In this document: one piece after another, positions 30,608-37,645 of the stretch
Numbering within the stretch: the first letter of the stretch is position 1
How the letters are laid out: every line of letters starts with the position of its first letter
Sequence record: OP589283.1
Length of the DNA: 64,000 bases
Reading direction: 5' to 3' (one strand)
Position numbers and translations under genes: made by a program
The notes under the pieces: model-generated
What the model was told of the DNA's origin: nothing
The model's input: the letters and a program-made list of their open reading frames with translations, nothing else
Database searches by the model: none

Positions 30608-33600
30608 TTACATAAATACATCAAAAGGAGTGCGACAACTACTTACAGGAAGAGTATCAGGCTCTAAACTGAGTTCATACAGTTCATTACCTGTCACATC
30701 ATTAAACACGTTACCGAGTTCATGTCCTGCAATGTCTAACATCATTTCTGCTACTTGGTCTCGACTCCACTGAAGGATGTCCAGTGTAGTAGTACTAATG
30801 TTAGGTTGGTCTCCAGTGTCTAATCGCAAACACCAGAAGAAGGTAGGACTGTCTTGGCCTTTACGGTGAATACGTGCTTTAGTTTGAATCACTTCATAAT
30901 CCCTATACGGGACATCAATCATAATCAGTTGGTTAGCCATTGTAAGTGGATAGCCTTCCTTTAGACTTTTGTATGTCGTGATTAACGGGTTGGTATTAGG
31001 GTCATTTTCGAACCGTTTAATCTCGCTGTCTGTATTTCCTAGATTCTTACCCGTAATAGTAACTGGCTTAAATCCATTAGCAAGAAAGTATTCTTCAGCT
31101 GCTTCTACCGCTTCCACATACGTACTGAAAAACAACGTTTTCTTTTCGACATGGTTAACTAGCTCAATTAATCCAGCGTGCTCGATAATCGCTTTAGCGC
31201 ATTCTCTTCGAGCTGCACCAAATACGTTACCAATTACTTCCCCTTGAATTTTCAAACTCACGTATTTTACCGCGGAACAATTAGAACGAAACTCTAACCG
31301 TTCTCTACCTGCTAATACACCTTCTATTTTTTCTTCAACACTTTTACAGAATTTACTTTTATCTCCATCTGTAAAGGTATTGAATCCTCGCTTATTGAAG
31401 TCATGAACATAACGCTTGTACAATTCAAGTTCTTGTAATGCAGTTGCATCACGTTTAATCTTTTCTTCGTACTTATCAACACACGCAAGATACTGCGAAC
31501 GAATAGAAGGAAGGTTAGCTTGATAGAAAGCATAGCGTTCCCGGATGTAGTTCAGCATTCTTAAACGGATGTTTTCAATAGTGAATTGTTCGGCTCCTTT
31601 AAAGCTGACATTAATCACTTCGGTATCGGGTGCTTCATCCATTCCGTCGATTGCCGCAATTGTAAACTTGTTACGTCCAATCCGACGAGCAAACAGTTCA
31701 TTTAAACGCTCTCTACCGCGTCCATACGCATCTTTAAACCGATCCCTAGCCAACCCTACGAACAACGGGTCTGTTAGGCTAAAAATAGCGTAGGATTCTT
31801 TACTGCACGCTTTCAATGGAGTACCACTCATAGGGAGAGTATGGCTAAAGTATCCTTTGTCAGATAACTCAATGATCATTTGGGTGCGGTTAGAAGTGGG
31901 TTCGTTGAAATTATGACATTCGTCTATAATTAATTTAAACTGATTACCTGATTTCTTATAGAACATCATGAACCGTTCGAATTCTTCAAACCCTTTGTTG
32001 GTTAAAAAATCATAATGCAAAATAAAGAATTCAACCGATGTATCTAGTGATAATCCACTCATACTTGTCCAGTAAGGTGGTACTACTCTAAACTCTTTAT
32101 CCAACGTTTCTTTCCATACTTTATCAACCAATTTAGGGGGACAAAGAATAATCGTTTTTGTGTTGTTCCCATTTAACATACGGGACCACATTAATGACAA
32201 AATCGTATTATGTGTCACAATAAAGTCATCAGTGATGTACAAATGACTTGGGTGGTCAACAGAAATACACTGAGTTAACTCATTAGCACGTTTTTCAATA
32301 TTGATTATCTCTAATTTGAGATTATCAGAATACTGAGTTTGTGTGGCTCTCTCGCGCTTATGAGTTAACGTAAACAACTCCTCAGGTCGAGGATACCGAA
32401 TGGACAATCGATAATCTGTTCTTCCTGATTTCTTTTCTCCTTTGTAAGAGTAATGTGGGATTCTGGTAGATAACAGTGCTATACCTCCTAAACTCCGCAC
32501 TAGATACTGCACACCTAAAGCAAGTTGTTTAGAACTGCTTGAGAAACTAATTGTTTTATTGGTGCCCGATGTACCATCAGTATCCAAAAGACCTTGCAAC
32601 AACTCCAATCGCTGTTGTTTGTTTGAATTTAAAAGATAGTCTACGGGAATAACTTTTTCCCAAGAACGTTTACCCATTAAATCCATTTCCCTTAAATCTT
32701 TTGTTATGTGAGAATCTACTGCTTTCTTTGTTCTTGGTGTGTTTAATGTAATGTTGAAAGTTACATCGTCCACCCATTTACAAGAAAGATGGGGCGGCAA
32801 CAATTTCTGCACCTTATCAAACAACTCTTGATAAGGTTTAGATATGTACGGAGTTGAGCCAGAAAGACTACCGTCACCCAACAATACACCCATTAAATAA
32901 GGATGGATTTTGAATTCTTTGGCTGGTCCATCCTCGGGCTCACACAAAGGGATATATATACGTTCATTTTTATTTTTCTTTAGTCTTTGCATTATGTAAC
33001 GTAAAGACTTGGTGTGCCATCTTTCACCCCACGGCTTACCCTTTACCGCATCTTTATTTTTTTCGTAGATGTCCCAAAGATGGTCTGGGTTACAATCTGT
33101 GTGACGCCCATCTTTGAAATGCACACGATAGACTTCGGTAATGCCCTGCGGGAATACCCCTGTGACTTTGGTATGAGAACCGTCTTTTGCAATAACGGTA
33201 TCTCCTACCTTGATATCCCCCATTTTCTTCCACCCATTAGGGACTTTAAGTAAAGAAGATAATGTCTGAGCTTTCCCTGAGCCTGCTTTACCATCTAATA
33301 ACAACCCTTTTAACTTGTAATTCTTAGTGATTGTTAGGTAACTATCAAGAAATTCTTTTTGTGTGGGAAAGGGTGTTTTTATAAATTCAGCTAAATAACT
33401 TTGTAATGCTTGATAAGGAACTGGATTAATCGTATTTTTAATCCATGTCTCGCTCTCCAGTAAATCTTTTAACTCAATTAGCTGTTTGCGTTTTGTCGCT
33501 GTTCTGCGGACTGTTAGTAATCTGGATACAATGTGGTGAAGTTCTAATAAAAAGAATTCACGAGTACGGATAACACTACCGCTTCGTAAAAACATGTACT

Positions 33601-33727
33601 TACCAATCACCGAGGTATTATAAAGACGCCCGATGTCGTATTCAAGTTTACGGGCATCGATACCTTTAATTTCCACTCCACCCATTTCGTTGATTGTTAT
33701 TCTCACAGAGAAGAAATCAAATAACAT
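30608..33727 (-). CDS. SF2 (SNF2-like) DNA helicase containing an intein
   Basis: Walker A GKAGSGK|T split by the intein; IIDECHNF (DExH), MSGTP, TYKSLKEGYPL, motif VI QTKARIHRKGQ. Confidence 0.9.
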   Translation of the reverse strand: MLFDFFSVRITINEMGGVEIKGIDARKLEYDIGRLYNTSVIGKYMFLRSGSVIRTREFFLLELHHIVSRLLTVRRTATKRKQLIELKDLLESETWIKNTINPVPYQALQSYLAEFIKTPFPTQKEFLDSYLTITKNYKLKGLLLDGKAGSGKAQTLSSLLKVPNGWKKMGDIKVGDTVIAKDGSHTKVTGVFPQGITEVYRVHFKDGRHTDCNPDHLWDIYEKNKDAVKGKPWGERWHTKSLRYIMQRLKKNKNERIYIPLCEPEDGPAKEFKIHPYLMGVLLGDGSLSGSTPYISKPYQELFDKVQKLLPPHLSCKWVDDVTFNITLNTPRTKKAVDSHITKDLREMDLMGKRSWEKVIPVDYLLNSNKQQRLELLQGLLDTDGTSGTNKTISFSSSSKQLALGVQYLVRSLGGIALLSTRIPHYSYKGEKKSGRTDYRLSIRYPRPEELFTLTHKRERATQTQYSDNLKLEIINIEKRANELTQCISVDHPSHLYITDDFIVTHNTILSLMWSRMLNGNNTKTIILCPPKLVDKVWKETLDKEFRVVPPYWTSMSGLSLDTSVEFFILHYDFLTNKGFEEFERFMMFYKKSGNQFKLIIDECHNFNEPTSNRTQMIIELSDKGYFSHTLPMSGTPLKACSKESYAIFSLTDPLFVGLARDRFKDAYGRGRERLNELFARRIGRNKFTIAAIDGMDEAPDTEVINVSFKGAEQFTIENIRLRMLNYIRERYAFYQANLPSIRSQYLACVDKYEEKIKRDATALQELELYKRYVHDFNKRGFNTFTDGDKSKFCKSVEEKIEGVLAGRERLEFRSNCSAVKYVSLKIQGEVIGNVFGAARRECAKAIIEHAGLIELVNHVEKKTLFFSTYVEAVEAAEEYFLANGFKPVTITGKNLGNTDSEIKRFENDPNTNPLITTYKSLKEGYPLTMANQLIMIDVPYRDYEVIQTKARIHRKGQDSPTFFWCLRLDTGDQPNISTTTLDILQWSRDQVAEMMLDIAGHELGNVFNDVTGNELYELSLEPDTLPVSSCRTPFDVFM
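32207..33271 (-). mobile_element. Class 3 intein (355 aa) with LAGLIDADG homing endonuclease
   Basis: Starts AQTLSSLLKVPNGWKKMGDIKVGD and ends FIVTHN/T. Block B DHLW, block F TQCISV and block G VTHN give the W-C-T triplet. LAGLIDADG blocks are MGVLLGDGS and LQGLLDTDG. Confidence 0.88.
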
Positions 33728-33759
33728 AAGAATCTACCCATATTAAATTATTGAAAACC

Positions 33760-33767
33760 TATATCAT
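33760..33767 (+). promoter_or_regulatory. Early promoter-like motif TATATCAT
   Basis: aacctatatcat, the same aacc flank as the TATATTAC copy at 46965; about 40 nt upstream of ORF 33806. Confidence 0.4.
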
Positions 33768-33805
33768 TTATTGGATAATGTTACTTAATTAGGATAAGAA
33801 ACAAT

Positions 33806-34021
33806 ATGAAATTATTCTTACTAATTTACATCTTTATGTCTTTTATGTTCACACCCTATAACAGCGTAACCTATTACGGTTTTGAAACAGTAGGGTATGA
33901 CCCTTCGCTTTGGTGTACATGGGTTCACCCTGACCACGAAACCCGTGTATTAAAAAGTTCTAAAGCATCTGCGATGACTAAAAAATTAATTGGTCGTCCA
34001 AGTGATTATGGCAATTGTTAA
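33806..34021 (+). CDS. Small protein with signal peptide/TM N-terminus
   Basis: RBS agga; MKLFLLIYIFMSFMF hydrophobic N-terminus. Confidence 0.5.
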   Translation: MKLFLLIYIFMSFMFTPYNSVTYYGFETVGYDPSLWCTWVHPDHETRVLKSSKASAMTKKLIGRPSDYGNC

Positions 34022-34076
34022 TTACCCCCCCCCTCTAATTATTTACATCAACATTTCTTAATAAAAGGAAAATCCC

Positions 34077-34811
34077 ATGATTCGTATGATTCTTGCAATT
34101 AACAACGAGTGTTTTATCGGTAAAGACAACAAACTTATGTATCGTTTAAAAGGCGATATGTTAAACTTTAAAACCATGACCCAAGGCGGGATTGTGGTTA
34201 TGGGTCGTAAGACATTCCAAAGTTTAAAGGGTGCTTTACCCAATCGTACTAACTATGTCATCACCAGTGACCCAACAAGCATTAATCACCCATCGGAACT
34301 CATCTTGACTCCGGAACAATTCAAAGAAGAGTTTCTCCCACACCATAAAGTAAGTAATGATAATGTGTGGATTATTGGCGGTGCTCAAGTGTATGAAACT
34401 GCCACTCCTTTCACTAGCGAAATCATCTGTACATTTGTGGATGATGACGAAGTAGGTGATGTAGCGCTAAAACCTAAACTCTTTGGCGGGTTTACTCATT
34501 TGGCGACATTAAAGTCTGTTGATGTGGATGAAGACAACGATAAACCTTATGAAATCACCCAGTTAGTGAGACATGAGGATTTAGAACATAAACTTCGTGA
34601 ACTTCAGGCTCAACAACATGAGATGGAGAAAGAACAGACTCAGAATAATCTTAGCACTCCGTTAGAAAATGGCGGGTTAAGACAAGGTGAAGCTTTTGTT
34701 ATAGCTGCGACTACTTCGGCTGCGCTATCACAAATCGATACCGAATCCAGAGAAGACTCCAGTGATTCTGATTCAAGTTCATCTGATTCAAGTTCTCCAT
34801 CATCTGACTGA
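34077..34811 (+). CDS. folA: Dihydrofolate reductase with a C-terminal low-complexity extension
   Basis: ILAINNECFIG, RLKGDMLNFK (catalytic Asp), VVMGRKTFQSL, LPNRTNYVITS, WIIGGAQVY. Confidence 0.93.
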   Translation: MIRMILAINNECFIGKDNKLMYRLKGDMLNFKTMTQGGIVVMGRKTFQSLKGALPNRTNYVITSDPTSINHPSELILTPEQFKEEFLPHHKVSNDNVWIIGGAQVYETATPFTSEIICTFVDDDEVGDVALKPKLFGGFTHLATLKSVDVDEDNDKPYEITQLVRHEDLEHKLRELQAQQHEMEKEQTQNNLSTPLENGGLRQGEAFVIAATTSAALSQIDTESREDSSDSDSSSSDSSSPSSD

Positions 34812-34868
34812 TTTATCCTCCAATGAATTTTAAGAGGGCTACCTTCTAACTATTCATTGGAGTTTACT

Positions 34869-35390
34869 ATGTCAGTAACCGCGATTGTGGTAATGAACCA
34901 CGAAAACAAATTAACAACCACGCAAAACCCACTTCTACGTGTTAAAGAAGTAGAAGAGATGTTGACGAAGTATGCAAAAGACGCCGTTGTATTTATTGAC
35001 GAACGTCAGTTTGATTTACGTCGTGCGCTTTCAGACGGCGCCCGTGAATTATTTGCCGTAGTAGGTGAACAAAATAAACCCATTGTTGGGGTTGAAAACA
35101 TTTTACCTAAGTCAGCAGAGTTGTTAATTAAACATTACTACAAAGCAAAAACAAGCGATGTTGTGCTTTTTATTTCTGCTTCTCAACTTGACAGAGTGAA
35201 AACTCACTTAGATCAAGTCGTGCTGGTTACTATTAATAACCCCAGTCGAGAATTAGAAACTATCAGTAAAGGGTTTACTGATGACCTTAAGTCTCGTGTG
35301 AACCGTAAAAAACTGTCCATGACGGAATGGTCTATCGCTCAATCAACAGAAGAGCATAAACGTCGTTACTCTGTTAAAATCTATTCATAG
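34869..35390 (+). CDS. Degenerate DHFR-fold paralog
   Basis: Aligns by eye end-to-end with DHFR (VTAIVVMN~IRMILAIN; VVFIDERQF~VVMGRKTF; VLFISASQL~WIIGGAQV; LDQVVLVTIN~TSEIICTFVD) but lacks the catalytic and NADPH-binding motifs. Confidence 0.55.
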   Translation: MSVTAIVVMNHENKLTTTQNPLLRVKEVEEMLTKYAKDAVVFIDERQFDLRRALSDGARELFAVVGEQNKPIVGVENILPKSAELLIKHYYKAKTSDVVLFISASQLDRVKTHLDQVVLVTINNPSRELETISKGFTDDLKSRVNRKKLSMTEWSIAQSTEEHKRRYSVKIYS

Positions 35391-35397
35391 TAAATAA

Positions 35398-35434
35398 AAA
35401 CGACTAAGCGGATGTAATGTCCGCTTAGTCGTTT
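35398..35434 (+). terminator. Intrinsic terminator hairpin
   Basis: aaacgactaagcgga-tgtaatg-tccgcttagtcgttt. Confidence 0.8.
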
Positions 35435-35450
35435 ATTATAAGGAAACATT

Positions 35451-36941
35451 ATGTACTTGCGTGAACCTCAATTTCATTTAAAGAATTCCAAACTCGCTGA
35501 AGTGTTTAACACCATTTTCAACGACCTTATTGTCGGGAGACAAGATGTTGAAACATTGGAAACAGAATTGTATTCATATGACATTTATGTTAAGAATACC
35601 ATTTTAACCGTGTTTATTTTCCGTGCTGAAATCGTTTCTCTCTTGGGTGAAAAAGACGTAGAAGTATTAGGTTTCTGTTACCCACGAGAGTTGGAGCAAA
35701 AGATTATTGACGTGTCTGTCAATAAAAACTATCAGACGGTGTTTAAAGTACCTAACGGGATTAAAGACCTAGAAACTGTTGAGGTTCGTAACCTTCGTTT
35801 ACAATCCCCCGGGTTCTCAGAGTTGTATAGTCGTTTCTTTATTAACCCGCATTACTACATTTTAAATGCGTATCCTGTACACTGCGATCCAAAACTTACT
35901 TTTGTTGAGCCTGCACCACTAACGCCTGAACAAGAAGTTGAAGCAGCAGCGTATGACCGTTTTTGTTTACACGATTTGCCTAAGTTTGAAAAGGCAAAGA
36001 CTTCATTGATTAAAGAAATGGGTGTCGCCTTTAGTCGTATTCCTGAAATGTATGGGCGTTTCCGATTAAAGCGGAAAGATCCACCAACAGACCTGGTTGC
36101 AACTTGTGGTGCTAAGCCTAATTTCAATGCTGATGATTACGAAGAACGTAAAGTCGACCATGACTTGTACTTTACATTCCTAGGTGAAAAGATTGAAGAG
36201 GTAACGCCTAATCCTTTCACTGGTTATTATGATGTATTGAAACCGGCCTTTATTGCTATACCGCACTATATGGAAGAAACTGGAACCCGAGTTGTAACAC
36301 CAGTACCTTTTGATAAAGTGGGTGTATCACCAAAGTCTATGCAGACTTATGTTGAAAAAGAATCTGATGAAGAAGATTTGCTGCTTATTGAAGAAGAAGA
36401 TAAAGACAGCTTATTGTTTGTCGATATAGACTTGTTTGAAGTCATGGACCGCATTCAAACTGCGTTTGACCATGTCAATCAAATGATCACTACCTTTATC
36501 AAGAAATGGGGTTATCACCCTGAGTTGGTTTCAAAGACATTTGAAACCATTAACATGTTCTCTTATGTAGCAAGTCAAAAACAAGACTTGTTATATTCTT
36601 TCAATAGCACCGAAATCTTGGAAGCTCACCTAAACAAAGTGTTAGGTCGAATTGACGAGATGAAAGCTGAACAGGGTGTCCCTGATGCGGAATGGGGATT
36701 AGATTGCGATAGCTGGGTATTATGGGATTACACAAATCCAGACAATCCAGTAAAAGTCCCTGAATGGCATTTAGGTGAAGAGTTGGTAGACCACTATTCT
36801 GAACGTTATGTGGAATACTTCTCTGGGTACTCAAAAAGTACACCTCATAAAAGCTTACGTCCCTATGTCACCACCACTGTAGTGCCGGAAGAGAAAATTG
36901 CTGAACATGCAATCGGTAGTGTTCGTCATACGTTCAATTAA
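35451..36941 (+). CDS. Hypothetical protein (496 aa)
   Basis: Long ORF with RBS aagga; no motif recognised. Confidence 0.75.
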   Translation: MYLREPQFHLKNSKLAEVFNTIFNDLIVGRQDVETLETELYSYDIYVKNTILTVFIFRAEIVSLLGEKDVEVLGFCYPRELEQKIIDVSVNKNYQTVFKVPNGIKDLETVEVRNLRLQSPGFSELYSRFFINPHYYILNAYPVHCDPKLTFVEPAPLTPEQEVEAAAYDRFCLHDLPKFEKAKTSLIKEMGVAFSRIPEMYGRFRLKRKDPPTDLVATCGAKPNFNADDYEERKVDHDLYFTFLGEKIEEVTPNPFTGYYDVLKPAFIAIPHYMEETGTRVVTPVPFDKVGVSPKSMQTYVEKESDEEDLLLIEEEDKDSLLFVDIDLFEVMDRIQTAFDHVNQMITTFIKKWGYHPELVSKTFETINMFSYVASQKQDLLYSFNSTEILEAHLNKVLGRIDEMKAEQGVPDAEWGLDCDSWVLWDYTNPDNPVKVPEWHLGEELVDHYSERYVEYFSGYSKSTPHKSLRPYVTTTVVPEEKIAEHAIGSVRHTFN

Positions 36942-37012: not shown

Positions 37013-37645
37013 TTATGGCGTTGGATTTGCTATCTTTTGTTCTAATACTTTAATGTACGCTTCTTGTTTGGCTACTTTCTCTTGTAATTCCCGAATGACT
37101 TTGACGTTAGTTTTGGCAGCCGTAATAGCGTTCTTGCGTGTATTCTCAAATACCTTTGCTTGACCTGCACTAATATATGCAGCAGTAGGGACCACACCAA
37201 TATGAACAGTATTATTAACACCTACTCGTGCTAATACCAAATCTTGGATTTCTTGTTGTGTTTCTGCTAGTACGTTACGCAACTGAGGTGGGACCACCCC
37301 TAAGTCTACAATCATCGCCATATGCTCGTAACGAGTACCGTCTGCACTGGGAAAGCTTTCTAAATAAGAGCTGGGTAAATAGACATCTTTCTTACCTACT
37401 GCGGTAAGTACGATAACCACGCCCGCAGAATTATCCAATTCTGTTAGTACTGCTTCCGCATCTTCTTCTGTCATTTCAACAGGAACAAACACAGTTTGAT
37501 ATAGATTAACGTTAGCGCCACGTAATTCATCAACGGTGCGTAAAGCTTCAACGGTAAAACAAACTTCAGGGTCTACTACTTTGTCAAAGGGGGGCTTGGC
37601 TTTAAAACTCCCTTCTACATACATTCCGGGTATCATGTTACTCAT
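37013..37645 (-). CDS. Putative virion structural protein
   Basis: 210-aa ORF with a C-terminal coiled coil; position typical of phiKZ-like structural genes near RNase H/UvsX. Confidence 0.55.
   Translation of the reverse strand: MSNMIPGMYVEGSFKAKPPFDKVVDPEVCFTVEALRTVDELRGANVNLYQTVFVPVEMTEEDAEAVLTELDNSAGVVIVLTAVGKKDVYLPSSYLESFPSADGTRYEHMAMIVDLGVVPPQLRNVLAETQQEIQDLVLARVGVNNTVHIGVVPTAAYISAGQAKVFENTRKNAITAAKTNVKVIRELQEKVAKQEAYIKVLEQKIANPTP

Follow-up and report, generated by a model that had tools for sequence, protein, structure and literature searches.

A predicted pseudoenzyme of the dihydrofolate reductase fold encoded beside a canonical dihydrofolate reductase in Shewanella phage FishSpeaker

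Introduction

Dihydrofolate reductase (DHFR) is among the best-studied enzymes and is normally a stand-alone monomer, folded as a central eight-stranded sheet with four flanking helices. The other large family of DHFR-like fold, the C-terminal domain of RibD (PF01872), keeps the binding of reduced nicotinamide adenine dinucleotide phosphate (NADPH). Here, we describe a gene of the Shewanella phage FishSpeaker (sequence record OP589283.1) that lies directly downstream of a canonical DHFR gene and whose product is predicted to have the DHFR fold without the residues of the enzyme. The stretch of this record that was analysed, 64,000 nucleotides (nt) in length, is referred to as the window, and the downstream open reading frame (ORF) as ORF2.

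Catalytically dead paralogues, known as prozymes, partner active S-adenosylmethionine decarboxylase and deoxyhypusine synthase in trypanosomatids (PMC6221367, PMC3663545). ORF2 resembles the prozymes in being, apparently, an inactive homologue that purifying selection has retained alongside an active enzyme, and in the phage the two genes are adjacent. The differences are that the phage pair is known from genes alone, that DHFR is normally monomeric and that an origin by duplication of the neighbouring gene is unsupported. The nearest viral parallel is found in Pandoravirus proteins named 'dihydrofolate reductase incomplete domain' or 'motif-containing' proteins, which are known from annotation only (PMC13390436). 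The structural model of ORF2 matches the predicted structures of these proteins in BFVD with expectation values (E) of 3e-7 to 1e-5. However, they belong to giant viruses of amoebae, are present in multiple copies and are often much longer (207-1215 amino acids, aa); they have no detectable sequence relation to ORF2 and, as far as is visible, form no two-gene unit with an active DHFR. A literature search found no description of a DHFR/pseudo-DHFR pair in phages or of a phage pseudo-DHFR; the author of a first-pass annotation of the window likewise knew of no such pair in jumbo phages.

FishSpeaker, whose host is Shewanella oneidensis MR-1, was isolated from zebrafish tank water and has a genome of 203,356 base pairs (bp); positions in the window equal positions in OP589283.1 minus 124,000. 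Between 33700 and 37700, window and record agree with 100% identity. No paper on FishSpeaker was found by literature search. The annotations of the record include a nuclear shell protein, the tubulin PhuZ and split multisubunit RNA polymerase genes. From these annotations, together with the homologues that the right-hand neighbour of ORF2 has in the phages RisingSun, Joad and EL, FishSpeaker is a nucleus-forming jumbo phage, that is, a chimallivirus.

Results

The predicted fold of ORF2

The gene pair is made up of the following features, given in window coordinates:

34077-34811, plus strand: canonical DHFR, 244 aa, UYE93550.1 (PF00186, E 2.9e-33; phrog_316, E 1.7e-38)
34077-34571, plus strand: DHFR core, aa 1-165
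34572-34808, plus strand: C-terminal extension of the DHFR, aa 166-244, a charged helix-like stretch followed by an acidic Ser/Asp-rich tail
34869-35390, plus strand: ORF2, 173 aa from ATG, UYE93551.1, named hypothetical protein, taken from the ORF list and assigned a DHFR fold in an AlphaFold2 model

The reading frame of ORF2 also opens at a TTG codon at 34857. The ATG at 34869 was nevertheless adopted as the start, because the same Met begins all relatives and a GGAG motif lies 8 nt upstream of it; no ORF of at least 40 aa on the other strand overlaps the gene. A comparison of ORF2 with the neighbouring DHFR by BLASTP detected no similarity. Likewise, six members of the ORF2 family gave no match to Pfam, PHROGs or NCBIfam, PF00186 being missed even at E <= 10, and none to RibD_C (PF01872). 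Two other resemblances were treated as chance. A sequence search of the PDB with the family profile returned a likeness to XPD/Rad3 over ~60 residues (E 7.7e-4), which did not reappear with Foldseek, and the PADLOC model PDC-M30A matched one of the six members (E 0.002).

Structure prediction with AlphaFold2 from the single ORF2 sequence gave a model too poor for use, with a predicted local distance difference test score (pLDDT) of 42, and the usable models were built on an alignment of six full-length relatives. All five of these reached a pLDDT of 87-91; in the best one the pLDDT was 90.6 and the predicted template modelling score (pTM) 0.87, with zero residues below 50. Foldseek comparison of this model with the PDB produced 356 matches at E <= 0.001, and the best 50 were all DHFRs (E 8.6e-10 to 2e-7, template modelling score 0.58-0.70, ~175-183 alignment columns). 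The entry at rank 10, 3jtw, is named 'putative DHFR' and may, we assume, be of the RibD_C kind. In BFVD, viral DHFRs or DHFR-domain proteins likewise made up the majority of those best matches that carry a name. The model contains an extra helix (~residues 134-145), which is inserted before the last two strands.

The relation was also recovered by profile comparison. When the ORF2 family was aligned by hhalign with an alignment of 33 DHFR sequences, a match of E 7.3e-5 was obtained over residues 1-135, colinear from residue 1; global mode gave E 1e-5 (2-173 against 1-164), and restriction to the DHFR cores gave E 5.5e-6 with a probability of 86%. Reversed-sequence controls reached E 0.013-0.028 over only ~24 columns, and 13 unrelated neighbouring proteins, used as controls against the ORF2 profile, gave E >= 0.15. 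The DHFRs of phages Wellington and phiKT1028, both outside the 33-sequence alignment, scored E 4.7e-4 and 9e-3 against the ORF2 profile, again colinear from residue 1. The single ORF2 sequence against the DHFR profile gave E 0.38; single-sequence hhalign found no second DHFR-fold gene beside the DHFR of Wellington, phiKT1028 or PhiXhv-12, a search that is powerless here given that ORF2 itself scores E 0.38. Taken together, the models and profile matches indicate that ORF2 is a true yet very remote DHFR homologue with the same predicted fold. The first-pass annotation had aligned ORF2 along its length with the structural elements of DHFR, and both the colinear, full-length profile match (E 5.5e-6) and the exclusively DHFR composition of the best 50 structural matches of 34869-35390 agree with that alignment.

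The upstream reductase

The description of the upstream gene as a canonical DHFR was equally sound. Its product covers positions 1-159 of the 159 in the PF00186 profile with 115.3 bits (cut-off 25) and retains every invariant column of the 33-sequence DHFR alignment. The residues present include G15, M42, G43, R44, T46, G101 and G102, as well as D27, F31, R57, Y106 and T119. In GenBank the protein bears the name 'DfrA'. The best trim_Dfr models of NCBIfam, however, score 52-67 bits against cut-offs of 250-400, and UYE93550.1 was accordingly classed as a generic phage DHFR and not as a trimethoprim-resistance allele. Other genes of FishSpeaker specify a thymidylate synthase of the ThyA type (PF00303, E 8.9e-68) and, by annotation, a thymidylate kinase. 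The ThyA reaction yields dihydrofolate, and an active phage DHFR is therefore metabolically sensible.

The C-terminal extension of the DHFR is a variable part of the gene. Between FishSpeaker and its closest relative, the locus L006, the DNA identity of the extension is 58-62% with insertions and deletions, and the flanks on both sides are 97-100% identical. Among the relatives in general, the tails are of very different lengths or absent; four share a short motif in mid-tail.

Loss of catalytic and cofactor residues

A DHFR column counted as conserved if 80% or more of the 33 DHFRs agreed in it, and as kept if four or more of the six ORF2 members had the residue. By this measure, the ORF2 family keeps two of 30 conserved DHFR columns, I5 and T35, both of which are taken to be structural. 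Residue positions follow the numbering of the window DHFR, and the register of ORF2 rests on the profile alignment; the functional roles of DHFR positions and the secondary-structure boundaries of the Escherichia coli enzyme, used as orientation, are general knowledge. The aligned positions of functional interest are occupied as follows:

Asp27, the catalytic residue of DHFR in helix B: invariant Val28 in the ORF2 family
Gly43: Asp/Glu44 in six of six members
Arg44: lost, with E, S, I or K instead
Thr46: Gln47 in six of six members
Arg57, which binds substrate: Arg in two of six members only
Gly101-Gly102: Ile/Leu/Gly followed by Ser/Asn
Tyr106: Leu/Ile
Thr119: Val/Ile

The register was tested with each of the 33 DHFRs as a single sequence against the ORF2 profile. 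Asp27 was placed on Val28 in 15 of the 19 alignments that cover helix B, and on Glu27 in none; the pairings of Gly43 with D/E44 and of Thr46 with Gln47 held in 19 of 19. The Gly-Gly pair of DHFR aligned with I102-S103, or in a minority of alignments with S103-A104. These pairings reproduce the substitutions that the first-pass annotation had proposed: the change of the catalytic Asp to V (D27 on V28), the replacement of MGRKT by IDERQ, the loss of LPNR, whose Arg persists in two of the six members, and the conversion of the cis-Gly-Gly loop into ISAS, where Gly-Gly pairs with I102-S103 or S103-A104.

ORF2 would no longer be able to act as a DHFR, since other residues stand in place of the catalytic carboxylate and of both glycine motifs that bind NADPH, and we infer that it does not reduce dihydrofolate. 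With two of 30 columns kept, the protein does not have the make-up of a normal active reductase. Compared with type I DHFR (PF00186, EC 1.5.1.3), the predicted fold is thus the same over its full length, with the same order of strands and helices and a similar size. ORF2 differs in having no PF00186 match, in the small number of kept columns, in the extra helix at ~134-145 and in the loss of the catalytic Asp, the G-R/K-x-T motif, the Gly-Gly pair and the substrate-binding Arg. The lost glycine motifs also set ORF2 apart from the RibD C-terminal domain family.

A small family, under purifying selection and linked to DHFR

The ORF2 family comprises seven sequence clusters; FishSpeaker is its one isolated phage, and a few relatives known from metagenomes make up the rest. 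Its members are 169-176 aa long with conserved start and end, and the frame is intact in all seven clusters. Four proteins of the family were recovered when 1.84 billion cluster representatives were searched exhaustively with HMMER, and word-indexed searches yielded six clusters altogether. No member was found in IMG/VR or in 185,579 GTDB species genomes; in the JGI metagenomes, the family was present only on one FishSpeaker-identical contig. When three members were searched by tblastn against 50,697 phage records, FishSpeaker was the sole carrier. The term 'system', which had been applied to the pair at first pass, goes too far for a family of so narrow a distribution.

The ratio of non-synonymous to synonymous substitution rates (dN/dS), calculated according to Nei and Gojobori, is 0.14 for ORF2 against its closest relative (synonymous rate, dS, 0.11) and 0.12-0.28 against relatives that are ~62% identical. 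For comparison, the DHFR gives 0.13-0.22 and the right-hand neighbour 0.03-0.23; ratios at greater distances are unusable, as dS is saturated. ORF2 is under purifying selection and has been retained for some job.

DHFR lies directly upstream of ORF2 in all five loci with upstream DNA, namely the window, L006/L007, L002, L008 and L005. Across these loci the identity of ORF2 ranges from 97% down to 32%; in L005 the upstream gene is cut, and what remains aligns with the C-terminal half of DHFR. Co-occurrence of the two genes in relatives, which had been proposed as a check on the pair, was thus found wherever it could be seen. The idea that the pair arose as tandem paralogues fared less well. Aligned by hhalign with the DHFR core of its own clade, a shallow profile, the ORF2 family gives E 0.12, and aligned with 27 other DHFRs E 2.2e-5, so that it appears no nearer to the adjacent DHFR clade than to other DHFRs. 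On these alignments, the 'tandem paralogue' should rather be read as an adjacent remote homologue.

Transcription unit and RNA hairpins

Three candidate signals accompany the pair:

33751-33779, plus strand: sigma-70-like promoter match upstream of a small ORF, 10 of 12 hexamer matches
34818-34862, plus strand: intergenic hairpin, 7 nt after the DHFR stop (minimum free energy, MFE, -21.4 kcal/mol, z -5.3)
35398-35434, plus strand: terminator-like hairpin with a 16-bp stem and a 5-nt loop, followed by a T-rich stretch (MFE -25.8 kcal/mol, z -6.9; terminator scan)

The terminator-like hairpin follows ORF2. It is found at the same site in L002, L008 and L005, where the stems differ, the loop motif is identical and the downstream sequence is T-rich; this motif is no dispersed repeat, as the window shows no enrichment of it. 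DHFR and ORF2 are apparently co-transcribed, in a unit that the hairpin at 35398-35434 would close. At the other end, the match at 33751-33779 is a possible, weakly indicated start of the unit: the region contains fewer sigma-70-like sites than its shuffles, and the site is counted as a consensus match and no more.

The 3' arm of the intergenic hairpin includes the Shine-Dalgarno GGAG of ORF2. In the relatives, L006 has the same fold, L008 a weaker one, L002 a different one and L005 none. RNAalifold returned no consensus structure across the relatives and Rfam no match, and a conserved regulatory RNA was rejected, the fold being limited to the closest relatives. Since the fold is not conserved beyond these, the hairpin is regarded as a lineage-specific feature of minor weight. 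If functional, it could couple the translation of ORF2 to that of DHFR.

Genomic setting

The genes around the pair are as follows:

30608-33727, minus strand: SNF2-type DNA helicase, 1039 aa, the left neighbour (Pfam SNF2-rel_dom, Helicase_C, LAGLIDADG_3 and Hom_end_hint)
33806-34021, plus strand: small ORF of 71 aa with a strongly hydrophobic N-terminus, upstream of DHFR (ORF list)
35451-36941, plus strand: conserved chimallivirus protein of 496 aa, the right neighbour (phrog_23926, E 1e-27)
37013-37645, minus strand: DUF7194/phrog_3241 protein (E 1.3e-52), a chimallivirus core gene whose position is constant in every related locus

The 496-aa protein has tblastn matches in the Erwinia phages RisingSun and Joad and in the Pseudomonas phage EL. 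In RisingSun, the helicase is directly followed by the homologue of the 496-aa protein, with neither DHFR nor ORF2 at the locus. The small ORF, DHFR and ORF2 therefore constitute an insert between core genes that is specific to the FishSpeaker clade. Within this insert, the interval between helicase and DHFR is variable, L002 carrying an additional gene of 191 aa, and the DHFR-ORF2 pair is constant. The small ORF gave no family match. L002 has it at 71 aa and L006 at 61 aa as called, and L008 has no called gene there; it lies in the variable part of the insert and may have no functional tie to the DHFR-ORF2 pair.

Some further observations concern the surroundings. The helicase at 30608-33727 contains an intein-like insert, composed of Hom_end_hint and a LAGLIDADG_3 homing-endonuclease domain, which is present in the helicase of L006/L007 and absent from the orthologues of L002 and L008 (684 aa) and from RisingSun gp211. 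The spacer between the small ORF and DHFR includes a run of nine C at 34025-34033, a homopolymer that could be prone to changes in length or to errors of sequencing. Neither Rfam families nor tRNAs were found in the region. In Vibrio phage phiKT1028 (L012, 4351-6392), the thymidylate synthase beside DHFR is annotated as two pieces around a homing-endonuclease gene, which looks like an intron-split gene.

Discussion

We favour, with a probability of roughly 0.6, the reading that ORF2 is a very diverged DHFR homologue, inactive as a DHFR, that serves as a non-catalytic accessory of the folate/thymidine monophosphate (dTMP) module. That a pseudoenzyme has kept the DHFR fold, as the first-pass annotation proposed, is supported by the predicted fold, the missing catalytic and NADPH-binding residues and a dN/dS of 0.12-0.28. 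The particular jobs that this annotation listed, a sink, a regulator, a structural protein or a decoy, find no support in these results. The unit would run from an active DHFR through ORF2 to the terminator, forming an accessory insert between two core genes of FishSpeaker-like chimalliviruses, and the module that it would serve consists of the ThyA-type thymidylate synthase, DHFR and thymidylate kinase of the phage. ORF2 would act by binding a partner, possibly the adjacent DHFR, through the remodelled face of the former active site. Conservation is concentrated there: residues 1-30 account for 12 of the 25 invariant columns of ORF2. In DHFR the corresponding segment makes up strand A, the loop that acts as lid of the active site and the beginning of helix B, and this concentration points to the former active-site face as the functional surface. 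The isoelectric points (pI) are compatible with such a contact, with five of six ORF2 members basic (7.8-9.5; ~9.2 in the window) and the DHFRs at 4.6-4.8. In a more specific form, ORF2 would be an obligate non-catalytic subunit whose partner in a heterodimer is the DHFR of the phage, or else a thymidylate synthase of phage or host, and which thereby controls folate recycling during infection; we regard this version as doubtful.

Several points weigh against an accessory role of this kind. One member of the family, P0006, is acidic (pI 5.4), which weakens the argument from charge complementarity, and DHFRs are usually monomeric. The conserved region of the former active site would fit a small-molecule ligand equally well. 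Glu27, which is invariant in the ORF2 family, immediately precedes Val28, the residue that pairs with the catalytic Asp, and the side chain of Glu27 could point into the cleft. The profile comparisons appear to give no support for a local or recent tandem duplication, on the weak evidence of a shallow clade profile. Finally, the conservation statistics are thin, because the family consists of seven sequence clusters.

The main rival is that the cleft has been rebuilt as a pocket for some other small molecule, so that ORF2 would be a neo-functionalised binder or enzyme, with a pterin- or folate-derived compound, a nucleotide or a different metabolite as its ligand. We consider this unlikely overall, although roles in RNA binding or directed at the host are less likely still. 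In favour of such a pocket, conservation is highest in residues 1-30, where DHFR has its active-site strand, its lid loop and the first part of helix B. N10, K14, T17, N20 and E27, together with Q47 and R51 of helix C, are invariant at 32-64% identity, and the invariant Glu adjoins the former catalytic position. However, all DHFR positions that contact NADPH or folate are replaced, and no enzyme family of Pfam or NCBIfam matches. The conserved acidic residue in place of a glycine at the dinucleotide-phosphate site would, moreover, argue against a nucleotide cofactor.

A host-directed role, in which ORF2 mimics DHFR as an anti-defence protein, decoy or inhibitor that binds a folate-pathway enzyme or an immune sensor, seems improbable to us. 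A place in an accessory insert and membership of a small, fast-evolving family are typical of host-interaction genes; ORF2 sits in such an insert between core genes, which RisingSun lacks, and its family is small, phage-restricted and fast-evolving. A metabolic role is nevertheless indicated by the terminator that ORF2 shares with a metabolic DHFR and by its strict linkage to that gene, dN/dS carries no sign of positive selection, and no defence or anti-defence model matches consistently, PDC-M30A having been found in a single member. We attach slightly less weight again to the idea that ORF2 is a nucleic-acid-binding regulator on a DHFR fold, for example one that controls the translation of the DHFR-ORF2 transcript or of further phage mRNAs. 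Binding of their own mRNA is known for some DHFRs and thymidylate synthases, five of the six members are basic, and the intergenic hairpin overlaps the ribosome-binding site of ORF2 in FishSpeaker and its closest relative. That hairpin, however, is not conserved family-wide, one member is acidic and no nucleic-acid-binding domain matches, the likeness to XPD/Rad3 being weak and not reproduced by Foldseek.

That ORF2 is a functionless, decaying second copy of DHFR, or that the DHFR-like model arose artefactually from too shallow an alignment, we consider hardly credible. The alignment behind the model does hold only six sequences, and the single-sequence model was poor. Yet the frame is intact in all seven clusters, length, start and end are conserved, and dN/dS is well below 1. 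The agreement of five models at pLDDT 87-91, the DHFR-specific fold matches in two structure libraries and the independent profile comparison tell equally against an artefact.

We class ORF2 as a new family of the DHFR-like fold, an orphan in sequence and a pseudoenzyme homologue. The family is undetectable by sequence models, and the present result gives an ORFan a fold and a likely pathway context. Because the family is so far very small and its function is deduced from genes and models, the immediate impact is probably modest. Still, a conserved protein of the DHFR fold, stripped of its catalytic residues and inherited together with an active DHFR, would make a kind of pseudoenzyme pairing new to this fold, and the heterodimer, if real, would be the first prozyme-like DHFR/pseudo-DHFR pair. 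The DHFR-ORF2 pair could thereby show how a nucleus-forming phage organises or regulates the cytoplasmic supply of nucleotide precursors.

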